Positions 20,416 through 48,534 of a stretch of 64,000 bases of DNA are shown in pieces. The notes below the pieces were generated by a model. That model made no database searches, was not told the DNA's origin, and worked only from the letters and a program-made list of their open reading frames with translations. How positions within the stretch are numbered: the stretch's first letter is position 1; every line of letters starts with the position of its first letter. The stretch covers positions 104,880,173-104,944,172 of the forward strand of contig NC_068984.1 of assembly GCF_001194135.2 (NCBI RefSeq), written 5' to 3'. This stretch comes from Octopus bimaculoides. Lineage: Eukaryota. The position numbers and the translations under genes were made by a program.

Positions 20416-22410
20416 CAGGCTTCTACTAGGTATCACTAAAGAGCACTATACAATGGAGACAAACACAGTTTGAACATACAAAAAGACACTTTTTACATCA
20501 ACATTTTCATGTCAAAGTAAATATTTTCTGAGGAAAATTATTTATCATTTGAAAGTTCTGGATGGGAACGTTCTTCTCATATAGTTTTAATTAAAATCCA
20601 ACAATTATATATCATGTCAGGGTCCCTCAAACACCTTGGTATTTCTATGCATTTACAAAGTTTGTCCCGTTTTTTTTTTTTTTTGTCTGCTGAACAGTAG
20701 CCCTCATTCTAATTCAATGCACTTGAGTGCCATAACCTGAGTTGTGTTAAAAATCATACTCTTATAAAGAGGATGGTCTTCACTTTATTTTGATATAAAA
20801 ATCGATGGGAATAGTTCAGATAATAGTTACAAAATAGAAAAGTGAAAATTTCATTGTTGATTTTTGCTTAGAAAAGGAAAATATCTCACAAATTCAATGT
20901 AATCATTGATAATTCTGGTCATAATATGGTGATGAAGGGCAAAGCGAGTAAAAATGGTGGCTTATTGACCCTGCTTGCCAAACTGACATATTCATGTGTG
21001 GTGAGAAGTAAAACTGAATACAAACCCAAGGCTTCAAATCTTGAACAGGCAAGAATTTCAAGAAATGGATAAACTTGTAAACATATTTCTACAAAAAATG
21101 CACTAAATTGAGTTTAATAAGTCTTCTAGAGCCCAAACTTAGCATGAAACCATTGTATTAAGAATGTTGTTTAATCCCTCTTGCTGTTTAAGCCACTTGA
21201 TAAACCAAGTGGATATTTCATTTAATTTTTCTTTGAGAGATATTGGTCAAATTCTTCAGATAAAAATATCATATTGTGCAATGAATATAATTTTGTAGAC
21301 TATTAAAATAAAATGTGATGCTCTTCTTCCGATTTTGAAAATAGTTGGTATAATTTGTGTTAGTGCTTGCATATTCATTTTGGATTTCTTTTCTCTCTCT
21401 CCTACTAACGAGTTTGCTGTAAGTTACAGATGTTGTTAATGTCTTTAATTTATGTTTTTAATGCTTAAAGCAAGGAATTAGTTTTCATGATTTGTTTGCT
21501 TTTTAACTTAGGTCTACATGCAATTCTGAGAAAGGTATCTGGTGGTTGTGGGATGTGCTAGAAACAACAGCCAAATCTCCCTTAAATCACACATCTTTTC
21601 ATATGAAAATATTTTCAAATTTAAAAAAAAAATTTCTGCCCAAAAGCCTTCTCCCATCGTTTTTAAGTGTGTAGTGCAAACAAAATTGGTCCAAATCAGT
21701 CCGGCAGTAGCAGGGGATGGAAGGGGGTAATGGTGGGTAAAAAATTATAAATTTTCCAAAATTCTTTTCATAAAATGCTTACCCCACATCATTTCCAAGA
21801 CCACAATGCAAAAAAAAAAAAATTGGAAAACTCCCTGTCAAAACAGGAGAAAATCTAACTTATGTGAGCGTCATGATTTGAAACTGTCATCTATAATCAT
21901 TTTTAATAGTCCATTAAAATTTTATGAAATTCCAAGATCTCAGGATTTATTTAGTTCCATACCACCTACAAACGTGCAAAAACTCAAGTCCCTGTGACTT
22001 GTACTTTTGGATTTTACTAGGTTTGAAAACACAGTGAAATATCTGTTTGCGACATGTAACAAGATATATTTTACATAAATATTTTTTAAAATTGCCCAAA
22101 AAAAGTTTTCTTTCCAAGAATCTGAAAAAAAAAATAGGCAACTGATATACTAAGGCCACTAATAATTTGTGAAATTTGAAGATGATTATCACCTCAGTTT
22201 CAAAGATATATCACAAATATGGCTAATTATCAATTTAGGCTAATTAGGCAAGATTTCAACCAATTTGCTGACCATTCAAATTCTTATATTTCCTAAAACA
22301 TTCACCCAAATTTTACAAATGAGGTATCAAAATGTTTCTTTTTGGATGTTCTCCAAGAAAAATTACAGTAAAAATAACATTTAAATATTTTCAAATATTC
22401 ATAGTGATAC

Positions 22411-22572
22411 CTACTTCTACCAATTTCCATCTACTAAATCTATTCACAGGACTATGGTTGGCTCAGAGCTATTGTAGAAGACACTTGACCCAGGTAGTGC
22501 ACAATGGAACTGAACTAGAACCTATATGGCTGTGAAACAAGCTTCTTAACCACACAACCACACCTGCACTGT
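22411..22572 (-). mobile_element. SINE family A
   Basis: Reverse complement gcaggtgtggttgtgtggttaagaagcttg...gttcagttcc...tgggtcaagtgtcttctac. Confidence 0.78.
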
Positions 22573-22725
22573 GGCTATTTAAAAATATAACTTCAGGTTT
22601 TAGAAAATCCATACTAACTCTTGAATATCTTGAAATTATGCTACTTATAAATTTGTTAGACACAAATATGATTAATAAATTAACAAAATGTAATAAACAG
22701 TTGTTTATTATATTTTTCTGCTGAG

Positions 22726-23742
22726 ATGCTTAAAATAAGTGGTAGAGTAGGATACAGTCTAGTCATCTGCATAGTTAATCATGTTACTCAGGAAGATGCA
22801 ATCCCCGGCGACTGGTGTAGTAGCTGCTTCAAGGGCAAGGGAGATGCCTTAGATAGAAGTAATCATAGGGGCTTTAAATTGCTGGACCAGGTGATGAAAT
22901 TTATGGAGAGAGTTATAGCCCAATTAATTAGGAACATAATTAGACTAGATGAATTGCAATTTGGAATTGTGCTGGGGAGAAGCACTACTGACACTATTTT
23001 CATTGTCAGACAATGACAAGAGAAGTATTTAGCTAAGAATAAGCCATTGTACTTGGCATTTGTTGATCTGGAGAAATCCTTAGACAGAGTACCTTCCTCT
23101 GTGATATGGTGGTCTCTGGGAAGCTAGGGATAGATGAATGGCTTGTAAAAGCAGTAAAGGCCATGTACAGGAATGTTGTTAGTAATGTAAAGGTTAGTCA
23201 TGAGTACAGTGATTAATTTTGTGTACAGGTAGGTGTTCATCAAGGCCTGGTCCTCAGCTCCCTCCTATTCCTCACCATTCTCCAGGCCATAACAAGAATT
23301 TAAAACTGACTGCCCATTGTAACTATAATATTCTGATAATCTTGCCTCATAGCAGAATCTGTAACAGAACTAGAAAAAAAATTCCAGGTGTGGAAGCTAA
23401 ACCTGGAACTGAAGGGCCTTAATGTTAAATTAGAATAGACCAAGGTCCTAGTAAGCAATAAAATGGACAGGACCATACCCCATGAGGTAAATGGCCCTAC
23501 TTAATATGAAGGAAAGACATAGGCAGGAAATCCATTGAGTGTACCCAGTGCAAGCTATGGGCACACAAAAGGTGCAGTGGAATAATAGGAAGGTTAACAG
23601 AGAAAGCATTATTTGTATGTAGAAGATATACAGGAGCCGTAAGATCTACAGATACACAGGAAATTGATATTCTGAAATTCCCCAGAAGCTCTCTAGAGGT
23701 AGTGGATAATTTTTGCTACCTAGGTGACTTAATTAGCAATAG
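22726..23742 (+). mobile_element. RTE LINE internal RT fragment
   Basis: KGKGDALDRSNHRGFKLLDQVMK...QFGIVLGRSTTDTIFIVRQ*QEKYLAKNKPLYLAFVDLEKSLDRVP; same family as 18292-20295. Confidence 0.9.
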
Positions 23743-24764
23743 TCTCCACCAATCACCCATCTTCAACATCATCATCTATCACTATCTTTATCTTACTTTT
23801 TAAGTCACTCACCTTTCTTTTCCAGTTGGGGTATCCATGTATCTACTCTTCAGCAAGACACCTATATCTGTCCCTCTATACCTTTAATCTCTCAACGGGC
23901 ACAAAGCTCCACCTACTCAATACTACTACTCTCTCTTTGTCTTGCAAGGTACCTGTCAAGCCTGTTGGTGATGGTGCCACAAAAAGCATTCAGTACATTC
24001 TGTAAAGTTGTTGCCATCATGGAAAGCAGATGTTAAATGAAGATGATTCTTAATAACTCTTTAAACTTTAAAACGTAGTTTGTTCCTTTCTAATTTTCCA
24101 TATGAAGTGTGCCAGTAAAGCTTCTTATTTGACATCCTATGCACCACTAAGCTAAAATCATTGAAAACCACAGTTGTAAAGGATATGAAAGACATTTGAT
24201 ATTATAAACATAGTTTTGTACTGCTTTGTCTTCAAGTTTCAAATTTTAAGAACGTGTTTAACTACCTTGAATTGACAATCATTATTTCTACAAAAATACT
24301 AATTAAAATTTTTGTTCATGATTATTTCATGAGAAAAGTTTGAATAATTAAGACTGCTATCATTAACAGAAATCACAGTGAGTTAATTCAATTATTGCAT
24401 GATTGTATCTTAATTAAAAACAATTAATTGAAATTCTTGTAGAAATATTCAGCAATCCTTTCAAATGCTATTTCCTATTCTATTTAAATTTATACCCTAA
24501 AGATGAAATTCTACATGCAAAGATTTGTATTTTGCAACAAACTTAAGTCCTTGTTCTGATTATAAATGAATCATCATTTCATGTGATGCAGTGATCTAGA
24601 TAATGCATTAAATTTATACAGAAACCAGTTTTAAATTGACTGGTGTAATTTATTTCATATAATATTGTATAACTTTTGCAGTTCAGGGTACCTATTCAGT
24701 AATAACTTCTCTCCCAAATTAGAAAAATTTAAGATACTTTATGTAGATATATCTTCTGCTTATA

Positions 24765-25140
24765 GGCACATGTATAGCTGTGTGGTAAAAAGTTTGCTTC
24801 CCAATCACATGGTCCCAGGTTTAGTCTCACTGTGTGGCAACTCGGACAAGTGTTTTCTACTTTAGTTTCAGGTCAACCAAAGCCTTGTGAATGGACTTGG
24901 TAGATGGAAACTGAAAGAAGCCCATTGTGTATGTGTGTGTATGTCTTTGTCCCCCACCATTAACAACTGGTGTTAGTGTGCTTATGTCTCAGTAACTTAA
25001 TAGTTTGGCAAAAGAGACTGATAGACTAAGTACCAGGCTTAAAAAGAAGATAAGTACTGAGGTAGATTTGTCTGACTAAAATTCTTCAAGGCAGTTTCCC
25101 AGCATGGTCACAGTCTAATGATTTATACAAGTAAAAGATA
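24765..25140 (+). mobile_element. SINE family A with downstream second SINE domain
   Basis: ggcacatgtatagctgtgtggtaaaaagtttgcttcccaatcacatgg...gcaactcggacaagtg...aagaagccc then gatagactaagtaccagg segment. Confidence 0.75.
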
Positions 25141-25171
25141 GATGAAAGATAGAATATATTACTCAGAAATA

Positions 25172-26292
25172 TGAGATGGTATCAAAAAGATCCTGTACAA
25201 GATCTGTAGAAAGCTTGCAGTGATCTTCATGAGGTAATGTGCTGAGTGACATTGCTGTGTTTGCTTTGCAAGTTGTGAAATTTGTGTTTCTTTAATCATG
25301 CATATGCTGTAGTCTGCGATTTTGTCTTGCGTTAAATATGGGAAGTCTGCCACAGAGACATTGAGCTTGCTTTGGCACGCTTATGGCGATGAGGCAATGG
25401 GTCGTATGCAATATTTTGAATGGCACAGGCACTTCAAAAGAAGAAGAACATCCCTGGAAGATGCTGAGCAATCTAGAAGACCTGCCACGAGCATCATCCC
25501 CAGAAATGTGGAGAAAATTCATCAGCTTGTGCATGAGGATTGTTGGAGAATAATCAATGACATTGGTGATGTTGTCTGTCAGTTATATGGGTCTGTGCAG
25601 CAATCTTAACATCTGAATTGAACATGTGGCATGTCTCTTCCAAGTTTGTCCCCTACCTGTTGACCACTGGGCAGAAAGAACATTGCATCAAAGTCTCTTA
25701 AGATCTCTGAGAAAAAAACAATTGTCTCTGAGACAACTCTGATACAAAGCAGCAGTTATCACAATGGAAAAGCCCTCCATCTCCACAAGGAGATGAAGAA
25801 AACATGACAGAGTTGCAGCTCAATCAAGAGTATGCTCACTGTTTTTATTGGTTTTTTTTTTACATCTGTGGTATTGTGCATCAAGAATTTTTCCCCCAGG
25901 GCCAGAACATCAATTGAGAGTTCTACTGCGATGTTTGAAGCATTTGAGGGAGGACATTCAGTGAAAACGATCAGCTCTGTGGAGCGTGAAGAACTAGATT
26001 CTTCACAATGACAATGCACCCTGTCACTGAGCTCTCCTCACCCAAGAGTTTCTTGCCAAAAACAATATGGTATCACTTCTGCACCCGTGCTATTCACCAG
26101 ATTCAGCACCTGTGGACTTCCATCTCTTCTCCAAGTTGAAAAGGCAGCTGGATTCCAAAAGTGGCAGAAACACTAGGAGCAGTATATTGCTGCACAAGGT
26201 GACTATTTTGAAGGAGATGATGTTAAAACTTAGGTAAATAAGCTATTTTTTATTAAGCATAACTAGTCCAGAAGCCTTTTGATACTACCTCA
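25172..26292 (+). mobile_element. Near full-length mariner transposon with TIRs and TA duplications; internally deleted pseudogene
   Basis: TA|TGAGATGGTATCAAAAAG ... CTTTTGATACTACCTCA|TA; CVKYGKSATETL..L..AYG...FEWH..FK...SLEDAEQSRRP.TS (HTH), DNAPCH, HPCYSPDSAPVDFHLF; first catalytic Asp segment absent. Confidence 0.92.
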
Positions 26293-27844
26293 TATAAAGG
26301 ACACAAAAAAAAGTTTTAGAAAATTACAGATTTCTGATTTCTAAGCATTTCTAATATTTTGGTAACAGTAACTGCATGCATTTCTCAAAAGCCTTTTTGA
26401 CTGTGTTAATGTGAGACCATGTGTCTGTGAAAGAAATTAATTATGAAAGGTATTAGAAACAGAATGGTTTTTAATTATCATTGGTTGTTTTATGGTAACG
26501 AAAACTTGATGCCTTCTTGTTCTCAGTTCAAGTCACGTTAGAGTTTGCTTTGATCTTGAATCAATAAAACAAATATAAGTGGATCATATGAATCAATTTT
26601 ACACTCCTCAATAAAATTGGTATTGTGGCTCATTAAAAGAACTCGTTAATCAATGAAGCTAAGTGCACGATGCATTTAAAGATGAAGAATTATCAATATA
26701 TCTGATTATGTGCAAGCATTCATACACATGCACACATTTAAAACTAAATTCATAGACAGATCCTTTTAGTTTTTGCTTTAAACAGAAACAAGCTTAACTC
26801 TATAAGACAACCAAAGAATATAGACATAACCAGGTCTAGTTATTTTCAACAAACACAACAAGACCAAAACATGGACACAAAATCAAATATTATATAGCGA
26901 CATTTCATTAGAAAGGTACATAATAGCAATCAAAATAGACTCGACTGATATTTTAGAGAAAACACACTTCTAATTAGCTTTACTTACATAGTATCATTCT
27001 AAATTATGTTTATGAAACATCTATTAGCCTTATTAATAAAGCTTCCTTACTAAAAATTTACTGAACTAATTTTGCACTGAATACTTTATCTGTTCTATAA
27101 ATACTGCAAAAAACATCTCTTTTCAACATTTTCCAACGAATGACAAAAAGCAGATTTCTGCTCCTTACGATGTACCTATATTCTTTCTTTCTAAACAGCA
27201 CTAAATGCAACCTTCTGTCTTAAGAATCACAATTGTATAACACTACCTCTACTTCTCTATATTCCTGATAAACATTAATCTCTACTGTTTTCAGACTCTG
27301 TATTAACTTTTAATCTTATCCAACCCCTATATCTTATGATATGAGAAGAACCTCATAACCGACAAGTAGATGTCTTCCTTGGAAATCAATGAACCAGGAA
27401 AATGGTTTATTTCAAATTTAGTAATTAGATTTTCCAGACTATTAGTCTCATCTTTAGTGTGCACATTTATAATATTTGCAGTATGATATTGGTTCACTTT
27501 CCCAGCTTCATCAGGAGTCTCAGTCCTGGATGGATACACAATATCAGATTGGTTTCACACCAGAAAACATTTCTAAACTAAGGGCAATCACAGGTGCCAT
27601 TCACATGCATCTTAAAAGTCTCATACTAAACCTGCATCACTGCCATGAACAGAGTTAGGAACAGTATTCTCATACAAAAGAGATAACAGGATTCTCTAAG
27701 AGATAACATAAAAAAGAGATAACAGTATTCTCAGACATGAAAATCTAGTCTCTTTCATCAACACAGTCTTAGATAACATATCACTAAAATCCTCACAAAT
27801 CTCCAGTGATATTTCTTGCTAGCCTTACATGCATAATATAGCAC

Positions 27845-27975
27845 AGACATGGCTGCAGGTTAAAAAGTTTACTTCACAAAACATAGTTCCAGATCAATTC
27901 TTTTGTGTGGCACCTTATAATAAATCAGTGCCTTCTCAATAGAATTTGGTAAATGGAAAATGTGTAGATGCCCGT
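27845..27975 (+). mobile_element. SINE family A
   Basis: cagacatggctgcaggttaaaaagtttacttc...gtggcacctt...atttggtaaatggaaa. Confidence 0.65.
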
Positions 27976-27992
27976 CACATATATGTGTGTGT

Positions 27993-28045
<53 letters not shown>

Positions 28046-28047
28046 CC

Positions 28048-28627
28048 ATCATCATCCATATCATCATCATCGTCGTTTAACGTCTGCTTTCCATGCTGGC
28101 ATGAGTTGGACGGTATGACGGAGGACTGGCAAGTCAGAAGGCTGCACCAGGCTCCAATCTGGTCTGGTAAAGTTTCTACAGGTGGATGCCCTTTCTAATG
28201 CCAACCACTTAGAGAGTGTAGTGAGTGCTTTCATGTGCCACTGACACAAGGGCCAGTCAGGCAGTTTTGGTAACAACCATGCTCAAAAGGTGTTTTTTAT
28301 ATGCTACCTGCATGGGAGCCAGTCAAGCAGCACTGGCAACAACAACGCTCGAATGTTGTTATCTATGTGCCACTGGCACATGTGCCGGTGAGGTGACACT
28401 GACAATGATCATGCTCGAATGGTGCTTTTTACATGCCACCAGCACAGGAGCCAATCAGCGGCCCTGGCAATGATCATGCTCGGATGTGCTCCTAACGTTC
28501 CACTGGCATAGGCCACAGGTTATGGTCTCACTTGACTTGTTGGGTCTTCTCAAGTACAGCATATCTCCAAAGGTCTCAGTCACTAGTTATTGCCTTGGTA
28601 AGGCCCAGTGTTCAAAGGTTGTGCTTC

Positions 28628-28628
<1 letters not shown>
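28048..28628 (-). mobile_element. RTE LINE 3' end with (GAT)n tail and internal about 60-bp tandem units
   Basis: Reverse complement matches ORF end and 3' UTR of 19780-20295; three to four gtgccactggcacaggagccagtc...atgctcgaatggtgc units at 28235-28505. Confidence 0.85.
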
Positions 28629-28656
<28 letters not shown>

Positions 28657-28660
<4 letters not shown>

Positions 28661-29418
28661 ATCATAAATATATAGGGATTGACAGTAACCTGCTTCTCCA
28701 ACATACTGAGAATTCAGAAATAGCAGTCAAAGAACTACTGATTTCAAAACTACAAATTATTACTCCAGCTTGATAGCGATATTTTTGATACACACAGAAC
28801 AAAAAACAATAGAGAAGAGTAAAAAACACTTGCCTTTTAGTTANNNNNNNNNNNNNNNNNNNNNNNNNNNNNNNNNNNNNNNNNNNNNNNNNNNNNNNNN
28901 NNNNNNNNNNNNNNNNNNNNNNNNNNNNNNNNNNNNNNNNNNNNNNNNNNNNNNNNNNNNNNNNNNNNNNNNNNNNNNNNNNNNNNNNNNNNNNNNNNNN
29001 NNNNNNNNNNNNNNNNNNNNNNNNNNNNNNNNNNNNNNNNNNNNNNNNNNNNNNNNNNNNNNNNNNNNNNNNNNNNNNNNNNNNNNNNNNNNNNNNNNNN
29101 NNNNNNNNNNNNNNNNNNNNNNNNNNNNNNNNNNNNNNNNNNNNNNNNNNNNNNNNNNNNNNNNNNNNNNNNNNNNNNNNNNNNNNNNNNNNNNNNNNNN
29201 NNNNNNNNNNNNNNNNNNNNNNNNNNNNNNNNNNNNNNNNNNNNNNNNNNNNNNNNNNNNNNNNNNNNNNNNNNNNNNNNNNNNNNNNNNNNNNNNNNNN
29301 NNNNNNNNNNNNNNNNNNNAGTAGTTCTTTGAAATCAGTAGTTCTTTGACTGCTATTTCTGAATTCTCAGTATGTTGGAGAAGCAGGTTACTGTCAATCC
29401 CTATATATTTATGATTAT
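28657..29418. repeat. About 97-bp near-perfect inverted repeat flanking an N gap (28844-29319)
   Basis: 28657-28753 is the reverse complement of 29321-29418 apart from a 2-nt indel (aaaactac vs aaagaactac). Confidence 0.9.
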
Positions 29419-29657
29419 AAATTATTTACCGAAGAAGGTTTTTTTCATACTGAGCTACCCGGCAGAAATTGTTAATTATTAATTTTATTACTAATTGATG
29501 ATTCCCTGCCCTGCATATCTATATATATATATATATATATATCAAGTTAATTGCAGAATAAAACCGTTATGTCATCAACTCAAAAAGCCGTAGCCCACCA
29601 ATGACCACATATAAGAAGTACAACATAGACCACAAACCCAATTAGTAAAGGGAAGTC

Positions 29658-30644
29658 AAAATTTTTATACATAAGAATAAAAAAATCGATTAAAAATACA
29701 ATAGAATAATATAAATAAATAAATAAACTGCGATTAAAAGTTGATTAAAAATATTAGAGACCGGTACAATTACAGTAGAAAAAAAAAATATATATATAGA
29801 AAAAATATAGAGAAAAAAAAATAATACATAGGGAGATGTAGCACAACAGTTCATTTGTTGAGGCGAATAGCCAATAAAAAAAGTTCAAGATATATAGTAC
29901 GAAAGTTCATCATGGCTTACGTTGGATTTGAAACCTAATAGTCTTTAGTAACCAAACCTGCCTGACTATTCTAAAGGGTATACTAAAAATTGGATTTTTT
30001 TTTTTTTTTTTTTTTGGTCTAGTCCATATTATTATCTATTTAAGCTTTGCTCTCATAATTATAATTTTTTTTTGACTGGTGACTTCGTTGATGTCTGTGT
30101 GTCTTTTTTTACCCTGAAGAAGGGGTTATCACCAATTTGTGCTCTATTGTGCCCTAAATACGGTGATATACTCTCGAAATGGCCATAGGTGTTCTGTGTT
30201 TGTGTTCCACCTATACTTGTAATCCACTGTAAATGATGTTTATGGTTTGACTTTACTGATGTTACCTGCGGAATGGTGAAATATGGATTTTACTTTGGAT
30301 GTTCTGTTGTTGTTTTGTCCCGTGCGCTTCGGTATTCCTGTTTATGAAATTGGATTTTACCTACTAAATTTGCTGTCATGAGGGAGGTAGGTGAACTTTC
30401 GTACTATTTATCTTGAACTTTTTTTATTGGCTATTCGCCTCAGTGAATGAAATGTTGTGCTACGTCTCCCTATGTATTATTTTTTTTCTCTATATTTTTT
30501 CTATATATATATATTTTTTTATTCTACTGTAATTGTACCGGTCTCTAATATTTTTAATCAACTTTTAATCGCAGTTTATTTATTTATTTATATTATTCTA
30601 TTGTATTTTTAATCGATTTTTTTATTCTTATGTATAAAAATTTT
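29658..30644. mobile_element. Fold-back element with about 252-bp inverted arms (29658-29909 / 30392-30644), probably a Penelope-type inverted terminal structure
   Basis: About 7 mismatches counted by eye between arms; CpGs retained; hammerhead motif in the spacer; no TSD seen. Confidence 0.75.
30109..30192 (+). ncRNA. Minimal type I hammerhead ribozyme motif
   Basis: CUGAAGA 30114-30120, extra A, extended stem II (GGGG/CUCUC outer, UAUCACC/GGUGAUA inner), GAAA 30176-30179, palindromic stem III AUGGCCAU, cleavage triplet AUA (after 30187), stem I UACC/GGUG. Confidence 0.72.
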
Positions 30645-31540
30645 CTACAATAAATGCTCTACCAAAATTCACATGTCATACATGTATTCAAAACTACTAA
30701 AATCTATGCATGTTTACATGTGAATACATGATCTTCTTACAGACAGGTTACATACATTTCTAAAGGCTTTTAAGGGACAGCAAGCAGGTTTAGTTCATGC
30801 AAAAGCTGCACATTTACAATACATTTGACACATTCTGTGCAAAAGCTATTCACATTGACTGCAAAAGTTCTCAAAGAATATAGATATGAGGAAGAACCAG
30901 CACATCTTGGCATTCTGAATTTTCAATCTGTAATTTCAAATTATTCTTGTTTTTTGTTCCACTTAAAGCAGGAAATACATGCATGCAGTGTAATAAGTAA
31001 ATAGACTGAACTTGAATTGATGATATCTCTCAGTCAGTTGAATATAAATATAATAGTGGAATAAGTGTATATACAAATACTTATAGTGCATTAATATATA
31101 TTAAATATATATTGATGACACATTGTGTATGATATATATATATATATATATATATATATTGATTAGATTTACCAATAAAAATAAGGACAAAATTAATTTG
31201 AACATCAAAATCTATTGACATAAAAACGTTAGTTGAGCACGATGAGATAAAGAAGGCAGCAGAATGAACTTGCAAATACAATTCATCAGTAGCAAGAACT
31301 CATATCAAATGAGAGCTTGTGTCAAATGAGATCTCATGTCAAATAATTTAGAAAGTAAATCATATAAAGTGTAACAAATCCAACAACTTCAAATAGTTAA
31401 GTATAAATACTAATACATGTAGCCTCTTATGTATAAATTGATTTCATAACTAAGGATACAATTACAGTACATGAACAGAAATACACATGGAGTTCTAAAT
31501 ACTGGTTATTTGTTATGCAATGTAAGGTTTAAATTGCAAT

Positions 31541-31597
<57 letters not shown>

Positions 31598-31599
<2 letters not shown>

Positions 31600-31805
31600 A
31601 GGGGAGCTGAAAAGGTTCTGGCTTTGGGTAAAAGAAAATACAAGAGGATCAGTTGATTATGATTTTATTCTACATATTCTCCTCTAAGATCCACACACTT
31701 ATTGCAGTGGTCCTATTCCTAAGCCCTGTAAAAGAACTCAGAAGGTTGGCCTCCAGCCAGGTTTTTTGTGATACCCTTAAAGCTAGGAACATTTCAGCAC
31801 CCCCA
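31598..31805. mobile_element. Mariner-type MITE (about 208 bp)
   Basis: Left TGAGGGGAGCTGAAAAGGTTCTGGCTT vs right AAGCTAGGAACATTTCAGCACCCCC inverted termini; no ORF. Confidence 0.75.
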
Positions 31806-32029
31806 CTCTGTGTGTGTGTGTGTGTGTGCATGTGCGTGTGTGTATGTCTGTGCGTGCATGTGTGCATGTGCGTGTATTCACCACCATCTTCTCTCTCTTT
31901 TCCAATTTGGGTAATCATATATCTCCCCTACAGCAAGATACATGTACCCATCTCACTATCATACTTTAACATATCATCACCCGGTATAAAGCCATCTCCC
32001 TCAAGACTAAACCTTCTTAGTTTAGGGGT

Positions 32030-32250
32030 TTTGGTGGCCTCACAAATGCTGGCACCATGTAAAATGTATCCTGTATACTCTGTAAAGTGGTTGGCATTAG
32101 GAAAGACATCCAGCTATAGAAACTATGCCAAAACATACATTGGAGCTTGGCACAATCCAATGGCTCCCAGGCTCTTATTGAACCATCCAACCCAACTCAA
32201 CCCATGCTAGCATGGAAAACGGATGTTAAATGATGATGATGATGATGTGT
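32030..32250 (+). mobile_element. RTE-derived 3' tail (SINE or short LINE)
   Basis: gtaaagtggttggcattaggaaagacatccagc...catggaaaacggatgttaaatgatgatgatg. Confidence 0.75.
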
Positions 32251-33384
32251 GTGTGTGTGTGTGTGTCTGTAGGTGTGTGTGTGTGTAGTGTTCGTATGTG
32301 GAATATATACAGGACCAATAAAAACTACAGATACTTGGAAAATTGATTCTCTAAAATGCCATGATGGCTCATTAGAGGGATAAGTAACTTTATCTTTAAG
32401 CCATAATGGGTATGCCTTGTGAGTAGAATTTAGTAGATGGAAACTGTTTTGAAGTTTGTTATGTGTCTGTATGTGTGTTCATGTCTGTGCCCATGTTTAT
32501 CAGGGTAAACCAGTAAGTAAGATTTTATGTCAAACACATAACTTAAGGACCGAATTGAAAGGAGTGCTTGGGTTTATCTGACCAACTAAAACCCTTGGTA
32601 AAAATGTCCTAGCATGGCCACAAAATCCAATGATGGGATCAGTAAAAGAATACACACTGTTAACAGTGTTCAATTGACAGAACTGTTGAAGTCTAAGATA
32701 AATTGCTTTGTGGCTAATCATTCTGGCTGTCTGTGCTTAGAGTTTTAATCTCACTGAGGTCAATTTTGCCTTTCATCTTGTACTATGTAAGAGTCAATTC
32801 TTCACTTTTTGTCTGTCTTTTTCTGTCCTTCTGAAAGAAATTGACTGTGTTCAGACCTAGAGGTCAATGGGTTCTGCTCAAAACATGCCAAAAGTCACAA
32901 CAGAACCCTTATGAATCCATCATCAAAAAGTCAAAGGCTCATAACAGAGCATGGCAAACTTACAACTCATTTAACAGGTTTGGTTGAACAAACAGGATAA
33001 ATAGAACATGAGTTATTATTTTTAATCAGAAGTTATGAAGTGAATCAAGGGTTGAGAAATTAGAGCACAAAACTGTCAGCTCCTGAATCTCCTTGTAACT
33101 TCTGCCATTTAAAAACAAAAAATAAAAACTCATTCAAGAGATTTGGACATTATTGAAATTTAGAAGCCATAAAAGCTGAAAATGTATATGAACTACATCT
33201 AAATTGCATTTTTTGTTTCCCACTTCACTTTGTCTCACTGAAGTTATAATTTCTAATCAAATGATGTGTTCAAATAGGTGTTTGTAATAGATATGGATTA
33301 GGGAGGATTAACAAAGGCACTTTTTGCAGTAGCATCTTCAATTAATTAAATAACATTTATAGTCTTTTAAAGTTTAAAACTTGA

Positions 33385-33515
33385 GGATGTGGCTGTGTGG
33401 TAAAGAAATTTGCTTCCTAACCATATTGTTTTGTGCTCAGTTCCACTACATGACACTTTGGGTAAGTGCCTTTTATTATATCTCTGGGCTAACCAAAGCT
33501 TTGCAAGTGGATTCT
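33385..33515 (+). mobile_element. SINE family A
   Basis: gatgtggctgtgtggtaaagaaatttgcttcc...ctcagttccact...ctttgggtaagtg...ccaaagctttgcaagtggatt. Confidence 0.75.
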
Positions 33516-34199
33516 GTACATAGAAAGAAAGAAAGAAAGAAAGAGAGAGAGGGAGAGCATCATACAAGCAGTGTTATCTATTTGCAATATTCTGCAAAAA
33601 CATTTCTGGCCATAAGGAAATATTACCTTGCTTGGAAACAAGTGAGGGTTGGCAACAGGAAGGGCATTTGGCTTTAGAAATCTGCCTCAATAAACTACCA
33701 ACTACCCATACAGGCATGGAAAGTTGACTGTTAAAACAACGATGACAATGGCAACAATGATGACAAATGAAAAATATACCAGGAGCATGAATAAAGACAG
33801 ATTATAACATCTGTTTTATTCATGCCCATGGCTTATTTTTGTGTAGCATTTTGTCAAAATCTTCCCACACCTCCCCAGAATTCAAACTTCTAAGAAAAAC
33901 AGAACTTCAAACATTACACATCAAACATAGATGACTGAATTTCTGTGTCTATTGATTCAAAATTATATATCTTTCTGACAACATTGACATACATCCTGTA
34001 GCACTCTTCAAAAAGTTATATGTAACTCTTAATCCACTAGATTGAACTTTCTCTATGAAGTTGTGTGAGTGGTTCTTCACTTTTGTAAGTTTTCTTAAAA
34101 TTAGTTCTAAGTTGTGAAATTTGAAAAAAGAAACTATTCAGAACAGTTTCCGAGAAATGTCTGTTTCAGTTGATGAAATGAGGTGGAATTACAAAGCAA

Positions 34200-34500
34200 T
34201 AATTTTGTCTTACTCAATTTTGCTTTGACAATTTTTTGTTGGCAAAAATTTTTTAAAGAAAAAGAGTTCAAAAATTATAAGTGTTAAGTAAAAGTTGTGA
34301 CTTAAGTCCGGGGGGGGGGGAGAATTAATTTAATGAAATCAGGGTAGTTTGTTAAAATATACTGTAAAAACCCATGTAATTTATGCACTTTTTTTTTGCA
34401 AAAATAAAAATAAACTTTAGGGGGCACATAAATTACATGAGTAGATCGTTTCCAGAAATTTTTTGTTGAAAAAAGATATACACAGCGGGTCATGTACTAG
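34200..34500 (+). mobile_element. Probable non-autonomous Helitron 3' end
   Basis: Ends CACAGCGGGTCATGTACTAG|T (CTAG followed by T); 5' boundary unclear. Confidence 0.4.
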
Positions 34501-34514
34501 TAATTATAATAATG

Positions 34515-34640
34515 TTTCAAATTTTGGCACAAAGCCAGCAATTTTAAGACAAAGGGTTTAGTCAATTACATCAACCCCAGTAATCAACACCGAAAAGATG
34601 AAAAACAATGTTGACCTTGGTGGGATTTGAACTCAGAAAA
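34515..34640 (-). mobile_element. tRNA-derived SINE family B (GGGGTCGATAAA...TACC-type central domain)
   Basis: Reverse complement has B box GAGTTCAAATCC followed by the domain also seen at 52385-52417. Confidence 0.6.
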
Positions 34641-34675
34641 ATCCCATCAATAATAATAATAATCCTTTCTACTAT

Positions 34676-35320
34676 AAACCCGATTAGTCAGGATATTGAG
34701 ATGGAGTTTGGGATAAAAGATGTGGTGTTGTAACCCTGAAATGTGGAAAACTAACAAAGAGTAGAGGGATTGAGCTTGCAAATGACCAGATTATTAAAGA
34801 GGTGGGAGAGGAAAGATACAAGCATTTGGGAGTCTTTAAGTTGGATCAAATCAAAGAGAAAGCAATGAAGGAGATGTTCAAAAAAGAACATCTCAGGTGG
34901 GTGTGACTTGTAATGTTATCTAAATTGAAAGGAAGGAATAAGATCAGGGCAAAGAATAATGGGCTGTGTTTCTCATGCACGACAGAGCAGGGGTTATTAA
35001 ATGGAAGAAAGATAAATTAAAAAAGTATTGAAAGGAAAACTAAGAAATTGATGACAGTGCGTAAAGAACTCCATCCAAGGATTGATGTTGCAAGAAAGAA
35101 AGGAGACAGAAGACTAATAAGTTGTGGAAATTGTGTCAAAAGTGAGGTAAACAACCTAGCTTGATACCATAAATGTCAAAAGTAAGAGATCTCAACACAG
35201 TGAAATCTGCTCATGCAGTAACACTGAATGAAAGCCAGAAGAGAGTGAACAAAGAACCTGAAAAGGAATGGAAGGACAAACTTATGCACAGGCAGTACAC
35301 TAGAGATAATGTAAGCACCT
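34676..35320 (+). mobile_element. R4/Dong-clade non-LTR retrotransposon RT C-terminal relic
   Basis: DIEMEFGI..CGVVTLKCGKL...GIELANDQIIKEVGEERYKHLGV...MKEMFKKEHLR...SKLKGRNKIRA.N.WAV matches the recalled R4/Dong pattern (MEFGxDKC, YKYLG, SKLNxxNxxxAINxWA). Confidence 0.75.
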
Positions 35321-36444
35321 TGGTTGTTGTCATCATCATTTTACATCCACTTTCCATGCTGACATGGTTGTCAATGTGAGTTGCCTTCAATTGGGTGCCA
35401 CTGCTCTGAATGACTAGGTTCTCACATGTGTCATTTGGTTTGGTTTTTATGATTGGATGCTCTTCCTAAAGCCAACCACTTTAAAGAGTGTACTGAGTGT
35501 ATTTTCTCATGGTGCCAACACTACAGAGTATTAAGTTATGAACATCCTCTAGATTTTAGTGAAACAGAAATAGAGAGACATTATAACTCTACGCTTTCTC
35601 TGCTCAGTCAGCCAATTTCTATAGAGTATTAACAGTAAATGGAGTATGGATGCTTTGTATGCAGTAAATGTAAAGTTGGAAAAGAACAATGAGGACAAAA
35701 AAGCCATAGGGGGTTATTAAATATGTGGTGATAGAGTAAATGTGAATACAGAAAGTAGTTCTTTTACATTCACAGAATAGCAATAAAAAGTCATCATCAT
35801 CATCATCATCACCATCATTTTAATGTCTATTTTTTCACTGATTAAATTCCATGGGTCAGATGGAGTTTAACCAGGCAGATTAAACAGGCAGTTGGTGACA
35901 GGATGGGCATCCATAATGCCCATCCTATCACTAACATTCAGTTGTTTCCAAATAAGGTGTTATTTCCCAATGATCAGATAGGTTTTTGCAGAATATTTGA
36001 AATGAATGATTTTGCTTGTATAACAGACACACACAAATATCATGCAATGTCAAGACAAACATACACAGACTTAAACATACATGCAACCTCTTTGTAACTT
36101 TTAGCTTCTATATCTAGAATATAAATTCATATTTATACCAATAATAAATTGTGCACTTAGTTTTGTAAGTAAACACCTATGTGACCATCTGGATAATCTA
36201 AGATCTTAAGGAAAAGAAATCAACCAGCTAATTCGCACTACACATATGAAATCTGTAAGTGGAACAATAAAAATATGCAAGACTTTTCTCAGGTTTATCA
36301 TGTAAATTTGTCTTTTTTTTATCTACATTCTAGTGACAGAGGTTCATATCTTTGTTAGAAACCAGTTCCTTCCTGAGAGGAGGATTTCAAATACTTAAAA
36401 ACACACGCTCACACACATACAAGTACACACATGTGACAGACATC

Positions 36445-36580
36445 TTTCAGTTTCCATCTTCCAAATTCACTCATAAGACTTTGGGCAGCTTAGTGCTGCA
36501 ATAGAGTATCATGCAGTGAGACTGAACCTGAATCCATGTCATTTTAGAGGGAAACATCTTAACCACATAGCTATGCCTGC
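36445..36580 (-). mobile_element. SINE family A
   Basis: Reverse complement gcaggcatagctatgtggttaagatg...caggttcagtctcactgc...agtcttatgagtgaatttgg. Confidence 0.7.
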
Positions 36581-37039
36581 ATCAGTACCAGAAAGTAAAT
36601 AAAATAAGTCTGGATGATGTAATACAACAAACTTTGTTGTCCATTAAATGTTATAAAAAGAATTTGTCAGTTAAATGAAATATTTTACTACTAACCCATA
36701 GGTCTTGAATTAAAATACACTGAAAGTATTTTATTGTGTATCTAGAATCCTACTTTTTCAGATCATCTCACTGTCATGAAGGTAATGTAATACTGGATAT
36801 GTTACTTGTAATATGTTGGTATCATTTCCAGGTCTGGGAATGGTTCATCTTATATCCTGTTAATGCTATGAAATTGGAGCTAATCACTGGCCCATAACTA
36901 CATCTCAAGTTTCTTTGGACATGTTTCACTCTTTTGTTTGCCTTTAATTTTTTCACAAAATGTTTTTAATGTTACTGACATACATACACACACAAGTATT
37001 AACTCATGGAGGTATGATAATAGTTATGTAAATTATAAG

Positions 37040-37290
37040 GAATAAAAGTTTAGAATGGTACAACAATACACTATAAAACAAGAAATGGACTATATACCTG
37101 TTGTAATTTGGTTATCTATAGTCTGATGATATTTTGGAATTCTTCTTGGCTGGAGTCTCCAACCAAGAAGATCTGAAGAAGGAATTGTAATTCCGAAATA
37201 TCATCAGACTACAGATAACCAAATTACAACAGGTATATAGTCCATTTCTTGTTTTATAGTGCATTGTTGTACCATTCTAAACTTTTATTC
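37040..37290. repeat. Palindrome centred at 37156 (arms 37040-37155 / 37157-37290)
   Basis: 4 mismatches in 116 bp; right arm has an extra 18 nt (37172-37189). Confidence 0.95.
37169..37205 (+). ncRNA. Minimal type I hammerhead ribozyme motif
   Basis: GAU-CUGAAGA(37173-37179)-A-GGAAU-UGUA-AUUCC-GAAA(37195-37198)-UA-UC|AUC; palindromic stem III AUAU, AUC triplet, 3-bp stem I. Confidence 0.68.
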
Positions 37291-37525
37291 TTTACAAACA
37301 ATACACAATGCTTCAAGCGAACTACAATACTCTCCTATATAAATTATCATTAGAAATACACAGAACATTTGGTTCACTGATACTCTTCTAGCTGGACAGT
37401 GAAAACTTTTTTTTAATGTTTATTTTTACAACAAAAAATTTTCTTTTGAAATCTTTGAATGTCTCTTGATAATAATTTGAAATAGTTTAAAATTCTATGT
37501 ATTCATTGTCTTATTTTATACAAAA

Positions 37526-39114
37526 CTAGCAGAGACACCCGGCGTTGCCCGTGTTACATGCAATGGAAGAATTATACTTTTCTGTTATATTTTCTCTAAT
37601 GAACTGGAATACCTATGATTCGAATTTCATCAAAATTGCAGATGAGGGTTCTTTCCCTCTTTACACACCCTAAAAAAATTCTAATCATGACACATGTATC
37701 CCATACTACTGATCTTTATGCGCAGATTCCAAAATTCCAGTCTTATGGAACCTGTTAAAAGGATTTTGCTCCTAAAAAATGGAGGTCATGGAGCTCTAAA
37801 ATGTGGGAGTTAAGGCCCCTATTGGGGGTGGGTGTCTTAATGTTAACCAGAGAAGTTGAATTGTTGAGAATCTTTTNNNNNNNNNNNNNNNNNNNNNNNN
37901 NNNNNNNNNNNNNNNNNNNNNNNNNNNNNNNNNNNNNNNNNNNNNNNNNNNNNNNNNNNNNNNNNNNNNNNNNNNNNNNNNNNNNNNNNNNNNNNNNNNN
38001 NNNNNNNNNNNNNNNNNNNNNNNNNNNNNNNNNNNNNNNNNNNNNNNNNNNNNNNNNNNNNNNNNNNNNNNNNNNNNNNNNNNNNNNNNNNNNNNNNNNN
38101 NNNNNNNNNNNNNNNNNNNNNNNNNNNNNNNNNNNNNNNNNNNNNNNNNNNNNNNNNNNNNNNNNNNNNNNNNNNNNNNNNNNNNNGGCCTTGAAATCAA
38201 TGTTACCATCTGGGGACTATGTGTGACCCAGTGATAATAAAAAGACTCAAAGGAGGTCTGCAACCAAATAACTTTACTCAACACTTTGCAACTGAATCAG
38301 TGGAGGCAAAGATGCCTGTCATTTACTCAACAATTTATGCACCACATTGCAGAAATCACAATCTAAGTATATCTCAAAGCAAACTCTTACACTGTTGTAC
38401 CATTGAATTACAAATAACACTCATCTTTTGTGCTCAGGTGACCCTACAGCTTTCAACAGTACAACTGTATTCGTCTTGTTTAAATAAAATGACTAAATTG
38501 TGGGTGTTAAGTCCCCATGAAGAGGTCTTTCAAACTTCTAAGAAGACGAAATTTTTTCATTTGTGTATAATACCTATGGTTAAAATTTCATCAAAAGCAA
38601 AAATACATGAATTTTCATGGGGTTATGGCCCTTATGCATAGAATATAATTTCCAAATTTCATAAAGATCCATTCAGTACTTTTGACCTAGTTTTGGATCA
38701 TAAAAAATGACTAAAATTTGTGAGTTAAGGCCCCCATTAGGGGGTCTTAGTATCCTCATGAGAAGTGGAAACTTTAAGAATACTTCTTGATGTGTATCAA
38801 TTACCCATAGTTGAAATTTCATCAACATCGAAAATTTATCAATTTTCATGGGGGTTCTGCCCCCTTTAAGCCATCTCAAATTGAAACCAAACATACTGCA
38901 TTATACCCGCCTTTATGCATTGAATCTAAGTCCCAAATATCATAAGGATCTATTCAGAAATTTTGGTCCATGAAATTGTATGAAACACACAGCATTACCC
39001 TTCTCCTTAGGCTTGGATTTTGTGTTCCAAATTTCATTACGATCGGTGCAGTAGTTTTCAAATGTATAAGTAACACATGAACACACATAAAGACATTGAC
39101 TTTTATATAATAGA
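37526..39114 (-). mobile_element. Non-autonomous Helitron with both termini (contains gap 37877-38187)
   Basis: 5' A|TCTATTATATAAAA at 39114; 3' imperfect hairpin CACGGGCAACGCCGGGTG then CTAG|T at 37526; AT target, no TSD; internal aaatttcat and cccc...gggg repeats typical of such elements. Confidence 0.85.
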
Positions 39115-39161
39115 TATGAATATGCACATATACATACATGTATGTGTATGTGTGTATGTAT

Positions 39162-39225
<64 letters not shown>

Positions 39226-39259
39226 GATAGATTGATAGATACAACTGAGNNNNNNNNNN

Positions 39260-39302
<43 letters not shown>

Positions 39303-39534
39303 GATAGATTGATAGATACAACTGAGTGGGCAAACAAAAATATGAGACACTGCCAAGTGCATTTTTTTATTTTGATAAACCTGGTACTTATTCTATCAGT
39401 TTCTTGTTGTCAAACCAGTAAGTTATGGGGATGTAAATAAACAAAGAGCAGCCGTGAAGCAGTGATGAGGGAGAAACACAGAGGCAAAGACACACACATA
39501 CACTTACATATAGACATACATATATATATGATTG

Positions 39535-39690
39535 ATTTCTTTCAGTGTCTGTCTACAAAATCCACTCACAAGGCTTTGGTTGGTTTGAGGCTATGGCAGA
39601 AGACACATACCAAGTCACCACACAGTGGGACTGAACCTAGGACCATGTGTTTTGGGACCAAGTTTCTTACTACACAGCCACACCTGCACT
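39535..39690 (-). mobile_element. SINE family A
   Basis: Reverse complement gcaggtgtggctgtgtagtaagaaacttgg...ggttcagtcccactgtgtggtgacttgg...aaagccttgtgagtggattttgtagac. Confidence 0.8.
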
Positions 39691-39933
39691 TATGTATGTG
39701 TGTGTGTATGCGTGTGTGTATGAGTGTATATATGTATGCATGTATATGTGTATATATATGTGTACATATCACATGTACATCTATATATATATATCTGCAC
39801 ATATACATGTATACATATACATCTATATATATACATTTATACATATACATCTATACATATAGAGCTATACATATACATGTACACATATACATCTAAATAT
39901 ATAGTTGTATATATATATATATACATCTATATA

Positions 39934-40242
39934 TCTATATATATATAAAGATGAGAATGTGTACCTGTGAGTCTGTCTGTGTGAATCCCTAAAACTGGAG
40001 AACTACACAACCAATTTCATTCAAATTTTACACATGCCTTACTTAGGGTCCAGGTAGTGTTTTAGACCAAAAAAAGTTTTAACTTCTTCCCTAGTGCGAG
40101 CCCAGTGCAATATCACATCTCCTCAATTATTGCAGTATTACGTGTCAAAAGTGAAACAGTAACATCTCTCTATTCTAATGTCAGACAGTTTCACTTTAAT
40201 AGTTTCACTTTTAAAGTGAAACTATTATTTCACATATATACA
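39934..40242 (+). mobile_element. Helitron-type 5' arm (left)
   Basis: A|TCTATATATATATAAAGATGAGAATGTG, (GTCT)-like tract, aaaact..aactacacaaccaatttcattcaaatttt; same architecture as the 39114 5' end. Confidence 0.7.
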
Positions 40243-40329
40243 TTAACTATAAAAACACTGTCTGGTAAGATATAAATATAAACTGAAGCTAAAACTTATT
40301 AAAATATTCTTACTGTTTCTTCAACTTAC

Positions 40330-40404
40330 TGGAGAAGGGCTCCTGGCTCCTTTTACTGCAGGCGAAGGAGTAAAAAACGAAGATATTTTGAATTGTCTGG
40401 GCAT
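40330..40404 (-). CDS. Candidate 75-nt first coding exon MPRQFKISSFFTPSPAVKGARSPSP with PIP-box-like motif
   Basis: ATG at 40404, donor CCA|gtaagt at 40329 (phase 0); QFKISSFF fits Q-x-x-[ILM]-x-x-F-F; similar to recalled human MSH6 MSRQSTLYSFFPKSPAL. Identity of parent gene unresolved. Confidence 0.5.
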
Positions 40405-40474
40405 TGATATTACAAACAAATTAACAATTCGACTCGAGAGGTAAACACAAACCACCCCGTGCTGACTGCAAAAC

Positions 40475-40484
40475 TCCCGCCAAA
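40475..40484 (-). promoter_or_regulatory. E2F-type site TTTGGCGGGA in a CpG-retaining patch about 70 bp upstream of the ATG
   Basis: Fits TTTSSCGS; neighbouring TGGCGAA; local CpG density far above the window average. Confidence 0.45.
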
Positions 40485-40495
40485 TTCGCCAGAAA

Positions 40496-41510
40496 CACAC
40501 ACACACATACACACACATCCATTTCATATATCTTCTTTCAATTTTTGCTCTCTGCAAATAAAATTTTTACGGATACAACTGCTTACAAAAATAAGGATTA
40601 ATATATCATTTCTTTCTACGTTTGTAATTAAATCAATGTTTTCATGATTAGAGAGAGGTCCAATAGAATAGCTCTCACAAACAGACTATGTACAAATTCA
40701 TTCTTCAGGAGTTTTCAAACAACATAATATCGAATTAAGACAGTAGGGTGTTTTGAGGGAGATTTGGCTGCTATTTCTACCAGGTCTAGCTACCATGTAG
40801 AGGTCTGATCTTAATTTTCATTCACATATTTGCATTTCAAAGATTAAACATAATCTTTTCCGTAAATCAACTATCGTAAAAATTTTATACGATGACATTT
40901 TCTATGTATGTGTGTGTGTACCTTAAAAGACGTCAATCATCATGACATACACCTTCACTCACTCACTCAAACTCTTTCTCACCCTCTTTCTCTCTCACAT
41001 GCACACGCACAAGCACGCATGCACACACACACACGCATGCACACACACACATGCGTGCACACACACACACATACATACACACACACACACACACACGTCC
41101 ATTTCATATATCTTCTTTTAATTTCTGCTCTCTGCAAATAAGATTTTTTACAGATACAACTGCTTACAAAAACAGGGATTAATGTATAATTTCTTTCTAT
41201 GTTCATCATTAAATCAATGTTTTAATGATTAGAGAGAGGTCCAATAGAATAGCTCTCAGAAACAGACAACATACAAATACGTCAATCATCACGACACACA
41301 CCTTCACTAACTCACTCTATCTCTCTTTCTCACCCTCTTTCTCTCTCACATATACGCGCAAGCACACATGCACACACGCACACACACACACATATACACA
41401 CACTTCTATTTCATATATCTTCTTTCAATTTCTGCTCTCTGCAAATAACATTTTTACAGATACAACTGCTAACAAAATAGGGATTAATGTATAAATTCTT
41501 TCTATGTATG
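40496..41510. repeat. Three copies of an about 349-bp module (40496-40710 partial, 40930-41278, 41279-41510 partial)
   Basis: Shared (CA)n-ATTTCATATATCTTCTTT..GCTCTCTGCAAATAA...GATACAACTGCT..CAAAA block; copies 2 and 3 share acgtcaatcatc start. Confidence 0.9.
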
Positions 41511-41516
41511 TATGCT

Positions 41517-41847
41517 TGTATATGTGAGATGAGATAATAGTTTCACTTTAATAGTTTCAATATTAAAGTGAAACTATTAAAGTGAAAATATCTGACATTA
41601 CAATAGAAAGATGTTATGGTTTCACTTTTGACACGTAATACTGCAATAGTAGAGGAGATATGATATTGCTCTGGGCTTGCACTAGGCAAGAAGTTAAAAA
41701 AATTTTTGGCTATGACACTACATGGATCCTAAGTAGGGCATGTGTAAAATTTGAATGAAATTGGTTGTGTATCTCTCAAGTTTTAGGGATTCACACAGGC
41801 ACACAGACAGACACACGGACACACATTCTCATCTTTATATATATAGA
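41517..41847 (-). mobile_element. Helitron-type 5' arm (right), inverted copy of 39934-40242
   Basis: Minus strand A|TCTATATATATAAAGATGAGAATGTG at 41847; colinear with left arm, roughly 85% identical by eye. Confidence 0.7.
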
Positions 41848-47862: not shown

Positions 47863-48534
47863 ACACCATGCTTGTGCCTGTATACAGCCATATCTGTGGC
47901 TATACACAGCCATGCCAGATTCAATCCACCATGATGGATGCACCTAATTAAAAATCTAAATTAAATGGACTAGAATTTTGGTATGTAGGCACCTTCTGAC
48001 AATCTGATGTGTTTTGGTATTAAATGGAATTCCTCACCAAAGTGAAGTCTTATACTCATCAGATTTCTAATGATTTCAGAAAATAATAAAGATTTTAAAT
48101 TATAATCTTTCATTTATTGGGGCAACTTTAATGAATGGCATTGGAAATTTGCCAGGGAGGTCTTCTGCATGGAAAACATATAGTTTAGTAGGAATCAAAA
48201 TCATTATTATTCTCAGTACAAGCAAGTTCATGTCTAGCTGAGAAGACTGAAACATATCCAGACTTGGCATCTACTTCCAAAAGATGAAATTCACTCTCCC
48301 ATTGCATACCATCATTCAATATTTTATTAATTTAGATGGCTGTGTCACACTTACTTTTCTTGAAAAGAAATAATCATTAAAGCTAATGATGTTACTCTTC
48401 ATTATTAATTACTCGTTCTCTACTATTATTACTCATTATTAATTACTCATTCTCCATTTCCATCCAACTTCAGTTTATTTCAAAATATTCAATTTACTAA
48501 TGCACTGAAGAAACATTATTCTTTAGAAAGCTAG

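Follow-up and report, generated by a model that had tools for sequence, protein, structure and literature searches.

A PIP-box-like N-terminal exon and a distant ankyrin-repeat exon probably belong to one ANKRD24/RAI14/UACA-family gene

RAI14, UACA and ANKRD24 are described in the literature as actin- and rootlet-associated scaffolds, and in the literature that we searched no paper links RAI14, UACA or ANKRD24 to a PIP box. PIP boxes are found at the N-termini of MSH6 and UNG2, and the UNG promoter carries E2F sites. Canonical PIP peptides vary in affinity between nM and tens of µM according to their charged flanks, and positively charged flanks raise the affinity (PMC6881253). We analyzed a 64-kb stretch of DNA (the window; GC 0.33, CpG o/e 0.18) in which a peptide of this type is encoded on the same strand as an ankyrin-repeat exon. 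Our results suggest that the segment 40404-40330 probably serves an ANKRD24/RAI14/UACA-family gene as its ordinary first coding exon and is unlikely to be a captured repair-gene fragment.

The candidate coding sequence begins with a minus-strand ATG at 40404 and runs for 25 codons to 40330, encoding MPRQFKISSFFTPSPAVKGARSPSP (Table 1). A preliminary description of this DNA had reported a 25-codon ATG exon with a GTAAGT donor, and both are present on the minus strand; its claim that the exon fits the ankyrin exon in strand and phase also holds, as the two lie on the same strand with phase 0 on both sides of a predicted 37.66-kb intron. Only two GTs fall in phase 0 inside the exon, GTAAGT after codon 25 and GTAAAA after codon 16, and the frame is kept with either one. 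Past the GTAAGT donor at 40329-40324, an in-frame stop follows two codons on. The pattern of a strict PIP box close to a Met, with a GTRAGT donor ahead of the next stop, arose in 2.5% of Markov-simulated windows and occurs exactly once in the real window; the combination is unusual, not astronomically so.

Table 1. Features of the candidate gene and its surroundings, in window coordinates (^, exon boundary; strand as given, with a dot for none).
Feature	Position	Strand	Remarks
Exon 2, 131 nt, IYDWTKIDEKLLKAIQSNNIDKVEIILTKRTVITTKLGPDGYS + 2 nt, start of ankyrin-repeat region	2535..2665	-	Homologues; Gigantopelta exon 2 structure
Predicted intron 1, 37.66 kb	2666..40329	-	Transposon remnants throughout
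Inverted repeat, left arm	39938..40227	.	In predicted intron 1, starts 96 nt downstream of donor; CpG o/e 0.24
Strong phase-0 donor CCA^GTAAGT after codon 25	40324..40329	-	Donor score 3.4, top 1.6% of same-strand GTs
Candidate exon 1, coding part, ATG + 25 codons, MPRQFKISSFFTPSPAVKGARSPSP	40330..40404	-	Probably ANKRD24/RAI14/UACA-family gene; in-register similarity to P0012/P0069 exon 1; rank 1/2,992 ATGs
Weak donor-like site in phase 0, GCA^GTAAAA, after codon 16	40351..40356	-	Exon 1 of the closest relatives ends here
Putative 5' leader/proximal promoter	40405..40494	-	Single-copy, without upstream ATG; possible acceptor ttttgcag^T at about 40463
E2F-consensus match TTTGGCGGGA	40475..40484	-	70 nt upstream of ATG
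(CA)n-containing tandem array	40495..41548	.	Directly upstream of leader; CpG o/e 0.61
Inverted repeat, right arm	41549..41845	.	CpG o/e 0.25
Second ATG...phase-0...GTAAGT mini-ORF, MKSNIISFNDYFFSRK	48355..48402	-	Superficially resembles family MKS....F start

The ankyrin exon itself calls for a partner of this kind. It enters in phase 0 at 2665 behind an AG at 2667-2666 with a strong polypyrimidine tract, and it leaves in phase 2 through a TG^GTAAGC donor (GT at 2534-2533). Because its peptide (IYDWTKIDEKLLKAIQSNNIDKVEIILTKRTVITTKLGPDGYS) follows an acceptor and contains no Met, translation must begin in an ATG exon farther upstream, one with a phase-0 end. The gene runs past the left edge of the window, beyond which the other family features (the remaining ankyrin repeats, the coiled coil and the C-terminal YRTHLLSAVQG...IIELR motif) would be encoded, and inside the window exon 2 is the sole family exon besides the exon 1 candidate. 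An exhaustive phmmer search with the hypothetical product of exons 1 and 2 recovered 14 proteins, every one of them through the exon 2 part, and the full-length matches are ankyrin and coiled-coil proteins of about 900-1050 aa. The Aplysia and Gigantopelta matches carry the NCBI name 'ankyrin repeat domain-containing protein 24(-like)', further matches include an unnamed Solemya protein and vertebrate ANKRD24, and we take the exon 2 matches to represent the RAI14 (ankycorbin)/UACA/ANKRD24 family. The members compared below are Gigantopelta aegis XP_041369655.1, Aplysia XP_005111831.1 and Solemya KAL5004334.1. No protein in the collection searched contained either window exon. A word-index protein search with the fused exons returned 0 candidates, from a sampled index in which such a result does not imply absence; with a P0012 fragment as query, the same type of search gave generic ankyrin proteins alone and missed P0012 itself.

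Gene structure in the relatives places a short exon ahead of this one. Four of the short matches (P0003, P0004, P0006 and P0013) are genomic ORF read-throughs with the sequence YFQ^LSEW, indicating that an intron of these relatives coincides exactly with the acceptor position in the window. In Gigantopelta (L002), coding exon 1 consists of the ATG + 19 codons, ends in phase 0 at a GTAAGT donor and is followed by an intron of 6.3 kb, and exon 2 (L002 16376-16506) is 131 nt long with the same acceptor position, length and phases as 2665-2535. A first intron of 37.7 kb is unremarkable in this setting, since long introns are normal in the family and the Solemya gene spans 139 kb.

The predicted intron is rich in mobile elements. 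Transposon remnants lie at 10733-12264, 19220-19672, 22726-23016 and 25322-25609, all on the plus strand, and a Pfam scan of selected intron ORFs identified the RT_RNaseH and rve domains of an LTR retroelement at 10.7-11.7 kb and a Mos1/mariner HTH_48 domain at 25.3 kb; two reverse-transcriptase-like ORF fragments in the intron gave no Pfam match. Foldback or inverted-repeat elements with arms 87-99% complementary occur at 29658-30644, 6358-6836, 37033-37297 and 28654-29422, the first of which has the highest CpG o/e of the window (0.97). Elsewhere in the window, a tandem array with a 29-bp period occupies 44825-45550 in two blocks, with copies about 60-76% identical.

The closest relatives of the window gene are two invertebrate transcript clusters, P0012 and P0069, and in both of them exon 1 has 16 codons. 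From its first ATG, P0012 (Logan transcript, SRR27666080) encodes MPKVREMFKFFRNSYD^ISEW. The P0069 cluster (SRR25158140 and SRR29271483; 26 transcript members, GC 0.37, CpG o/e 0.31) was recovered independently, by a profile search, and begins with MAKVKNMFKFFKTSRE^FTDW; P0069 and window exon 2 have a derived GPDGY in common. Identity to the window in exon 2 is only 53-56%. In exon 1, the window peptide matches the two clusters in register at M1, P2, K/R3, M/I7, F10, F11 and S14. An anchored ungapped comparison with P0012 gave a score of 21 (p = 0.006 per candidate, 0.03 per window; the null for the N-terminus comparisons consisted of candidate exons taken from simulated Markov sequences), and at the DNA level 25/48 and 27/48 of the first 48 nt of the relatives' exon 1 are identical in register. 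When the scores were combined, the ATG at 40404 ranked 1/2,992 over both strands, its only tie being an ATG on the wrong strand with a stop after 8 codons. Upstream of 2665, the minus strand offers an ATG followed in phase 0 by GTRAGT at only two loci, 40404-40330 and 48402-48355.

Similarity to the more distant orthologs is weaker. Their exon 1 (MKSLFRGFRKSTTD and similar) matches the window with a local-alignment p of 0.20 per window, and across the family the N-termini vary from (M)K[SN]LF[KR].F[RK]KSTTD in gastropods and bivalves and MKSLKAKF.. in vertebrates to M.KV..MFKFF..S in the closest clade. The preliminary description had offered, as its first option, an ankyrin-gene N-terminus with an S-phase promoter and PCNA binding. 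The first part of that option is supported, and we infer both the homology of exon 1 and its splicing from 40330 to 2665 on three grounds: gene structure is conserved, exon 1 of the relatives is similar in register, and the candidate has the top rank among all ATGs. The GTAAAA at codon 16 may be an ancestral or alternative donor, and since it coincides with the end of the relatives' exon 1, the Ser/Pro-rich VKGARSPSP may be a 27-nt exon extension produced by a donor shift.

The S-phase and PCNA part of that option is unsupported because the relatives lack the Gln of the PIP box and the distant orthologs have basic N-termini of the MKSLF..F type. Residues 4-11 of MPRQFKISSFFTPSPAVKGARSPSP, QFKISSFF, fit the canonical consensus Q-x-x-[ILM]-x-x-[FY]-[FY]. 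Among the orthologs compared, however, the Gln is absent: the equivalent segments are VREMFKFF in P0012, VKNMFKFF in P0069, and NLFKFR or SLFRGF elsewhere. The apparent PIP box is therefore most likely, to judge from these alignments, the N-terminal [MI]xxFF motif of the clade with a species-specific Gln added. Around the motif, R3 and K6 lie before or within it and K18 and R21 downstream, with a modest net charge. As the affinity of such peptides depends on their flanks, PCNA binding by this candidate is chemically plausible but not implied by the motif alone; it is possible on chemical grounds and not indicated by conservation. A PDB sequence search with the 25-mer gave 0 matches. The relatives' N-termini (MAKVKNMFKFFKTS) align in register with MSH6 (MSRQSTLYSFFPKS) at M1, K/R3, M/L7, F/Y8, F10, F11 and S14, a register that would make a Gln-less PIP-like N-terminus a property of the whole clade, beyond the species of the window.

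We also considered a stronger version of this idea, in which the [MI]xxFF motif of a lineage's ANKRD24/RAI14-type scaffold became a functional PIP box and, with a CDK-type S/T-P tail and an E2F promoter, made the protein an S-phase tether for PCNA. We consider this quite improbable, and the PCNA and S-phase reading more likely an appealing coincidence that rests on the clade's FF motif. If it were true, the [MI]xxFF N-termini of the relatives could also be weak, Gln-less PIP-like motifs, and binding of the peptide to PCNA would be the first connection between the ankycorbin/ANKRD24 family and the replication clamp, as the literature that we searched holds none. Given the pattern of conservation, a PCNA link for this family is unlikely.

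The preliminary description had pointed to an E2F site about 70 bp upstream, and TTTGGCGGGA, which fits the consensus well, is indeed located there at 40484-40475, with 0 ATGs between it and the start codon. TTTSSCGS matches twice in the window, where 0.74 matches are expected, and at least 2 are obtained in 17% of shuffles; with density at this chance level, the match is notable for its position only. The retention of CpG that had also been claimed is real: the 267-nt unique segment 40228-40494 has a CpG o/e of 0.82, versus 0.14 in the remainder of the window. Other repeat elements in the window retain CpG as well (o/e 0.47-0.97), and for this reason we rejected a CpG island as specific promoter evidence. 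The elevated CpG at the exon may stem from promoter hypomethylation or simply from repeat DNA of younger age, and together with the E2F match it is weak evidence of a promoter. An S-phase promoter is not supported, given that CpG retention is not specific to promoters and that no TTTSSCGS motif occurs in the 10 kb upstream of the Gigantopelta ATG. The exon might even be internal rather than first, entered through the ttttgcag^T acceptor between the E2F match and the ATG. Comparison of the window leader with the 5'UTRs of the relatives' transcripts L001 and L003 gave no significant similarity. Those two 5'UTRs have an element in common upstream of the ATG, TTGGA.AA.TTACTTGTGTGAA (L001 50-75, L003 25-50), and a search upstream of the window's exon for its counterpart yielded no significant match.

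An unlikely alternative, though one that we retain mainly for its account of the inverted-repeat and array layout, is that the exon is an orphan 5' fragment of a replication or repair gene of the UNG2 or MSH6 type, comprising its promoter, its exon 1 and the beginning of its intron 1, carried into intron 1 of the ankyrin gene by an inverted-repeat element and perhaps sometimes spliced to exon 2 as a chimera. The layout, which the preliminary description had missed, is as follows. Two arms, 39938-40227 and 41549-41845, are 87% complementary over about 290 nt and enclose the 267-nt unique segment 40228-40494, with the exon, together with the array 40495-41548, whose units (40495-40697, 41075-41278 and 41382-41512) are about 90% identical, recur with a period of about 300-580 nt and each contain a (CA)n-like stretch. 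The unique DNA is thus bounded sharply by an inverted-repeat arm on one side and the (CA)n array on the other, and both outer arm ends run into TA-rich TATATATA; these TA-rich flanks prevent the call of an unambiguous target-site duplication. A 267-nt segment between 87% inverted repeats beside an array is the layout expected of a transposon-carried fragment, and it counts against the first-exon assignment. However, no further copy of either arm occurs in the window, and we saw no transposase or Helitron hallmark in the exon-bearing structure. As this exon shares in-register homology with the first exon of the host family, the arms may instead have arisen around an exon already in place, as repeat insertions or through an inverted duplication.

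Two side observations concern the arms. Their inner ends (40197-40227 and 41539-41579) contain palindromic AGTTTCACTTT / AAAGTGAAACT repeats that resemble ISRE/IRF binding sites (GAAANNGAAACT), with 3-4 copies within 100-200 nt downstream of the donor. Just outside the right arm, at 41929-42014, lies a perfect 17-bp tandem repeat of TAGATGAAGTCCAGCTA (5.1 copies, 100% matches).

The likeness of the peptide to repair proteins is genuine but covers a short stretch. A claimed match of 9/17 residues to human MSH6 was confirmed, with residues 3-17 checked against a published sequence (PMC6881253); over 24 aa, identity is 54% to human UNG2 versus 46% to MSH6, and SFFTPSP is identical to a variant of the UNG2 peptide. 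A canonical PIP box at the Met distance seen in MSH6 and UNG2, SFFTPSP and an E2F consensus 70 nt upstream would together be natural at the 5' end of a replication or repair gene. However, when human UNG2, MSH6 and LIG1 were used as tblastn queries against the 64-kb window, the matches of MSH6 and UNG2 to the exon 1 peptide were not significant (E = 1.2-1.5), and none of the core exons of UNG, MSH6 or LIG1 (MutS, PWWP, UDG, ligase) was found in the window, which upholds the earlier statement that other MSH6 exons are missing from it. A repair-gene fragment would also have to show by coincidence the in-register similarity to the ankyrin family (p about 0.006, first in rank), the GT at codon 16, the correct strand and the correct phase. 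Because the likeness consists of a short linear motif and a Ser/Pro-rich linker, the resemblance of exon 1 to the N-termini of MSH6 and UNG2 is most likely convergent. The remaining options of the preliminary description are not supported: for a Helitron-captured MSH6-like exon, there is no other UNG, MSH6 or LIG1 exon, E is about 1 and nothing is Helitron-like, and a transposon-encoded protein gained no support.

Alternatively, the true first coding exon could lie elsewhere, either at 48402-48355 or upstream of the window, with the 40330 exon as an alternative first exon or a duplicate; we regard this as very unlikely. The 48402 locus is the only other candidate with an ATG, phase 0 and GTRAGT, its MKS....F start can be compared with vertebrate MKSLKAKF and Solemya MKSLFRGF, and, as in Gigantopelta, its ATG is preceded at about 100 nt by a possible acceptor. 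In simulation, nevertheless, it resembles the family no more than chance would predict (p per candidate and per window: 0.13 and 0.44 in the anchored comparison, 0.51 and 0.95 in the local one), and for this reason we rejected the 48402 exon (MKSNIISF...) as the family's exon 1. In the ranking by DNA identity to exon 1 of the relatives it comes 315/2,992, its ATG falls within a low-complexity, AT-rich duplication (a duplicated 16-mer) behind several upstream ATGs, and an equal length of sequence is expected to yield about 5-7 such candidates by chance.

That the segment is a chance ORF fitting these motifs and no exon at all is highly improbable: strict PIP patterns are indeed common (14 in six-frame translation against 11 expected) and random windows do produce the full pattern, but at p = 0.025 for PIP box and donor, a chance ORF would also need the first rank, CpG retention, and the strand and phase that an exon 2 in need of a partner demands.

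Returning to the first-exon assignment, transcription would start within about 100 nt upstream of the exon or at a further non-coding exon. Exon 1 would supply the initiator Met and a 25-residue leader, or 16 residues if the weak GTAAAA donor were used, and would be joined in phase 0 to the 131-nt exon at 2665-2535, over a 37.7-kb intron rich in transposons. The predicted product would have ankyrin repeats at its N-terminus and, after them, a long coiled coil. Its leader would be this lineage's form of the family's short basic and aromatic N-terminal exon, which in the closest relatives reads M-[AP]-K-V-[KR]-x-M-F-K-F-F-x-x-S; M/I7, F10 and F11 would have been kept, and residue 4 would happen to be Gln, completing Q-x-x-I-x-x-F-F.

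For annotation, the value of this assignment is that a large ankyrin and coiled-coil gene can be given its start codon and exon 1 across a 37.7-kb intron. The locus also illustrates that a striking short-linear-motif match, here a PIP box with an E2F site, can arise in the N-terminal exon of an unrelated family.

Comparison with known systems brings these points together. Like non-autonomous DNA elements of the TIR or foldback type, the structure around the exon has inverted arms of ~290 nt (87%), an internal tandem array and TA-rich outer ends; unlike them, it is present as 1 copy in 64 kb, has no transposase and encloses a unique segment homologous to a host-gene exon. Like MSH6 (MSRQSTLYSFFPKSPAL) and UNG2 (MIGQKTLYSFF[S/T]PSP), the peptide reads Q4-x-x-[IL]7-x-x-F10-F11 at the same distance from Met with a Ser/Pro-rich stretch after it, whereas the downstream exon here is an ankyrin-repeat exon and the window holds no MutS, PWWP or UDG exon. 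Relative to ANKRD24/RAI14/UACA genes, the window's exon 1 differs in having no KSTTD motif, a Ser/Pro-rich extension (TPSPAVKGARSPSP) and Gln at position 4, where P0012 (VREMFKFF) and P0069 (VKNMFKFF) have Val, and intron 1 is 37.7 kb compared to 6.3 kb in Gigantopelta. With P0012 and P0069, the window has in common M-[AP]-[KR]-x-x-x-[MI]-x-x-F-F-x-x-S in identical register from Met, GPDGY/GPRGY and I[DH]KV in exon 2, and a phase-0 GT (codon 16) at the position where exon 1 of both clusters ends. With the ANKRD24/RAI14/UACA genes at large, it has in common a short phase-0 ATG exon (14-24 codons there, 25 or 16 here) encoding an aromatic, basic N-terminal peptide, long introns, and a 131-nt exon whose start precedes an invariant Trp (DW/EW.K.DEKL) by 3 residues and whose end is in phase 2.
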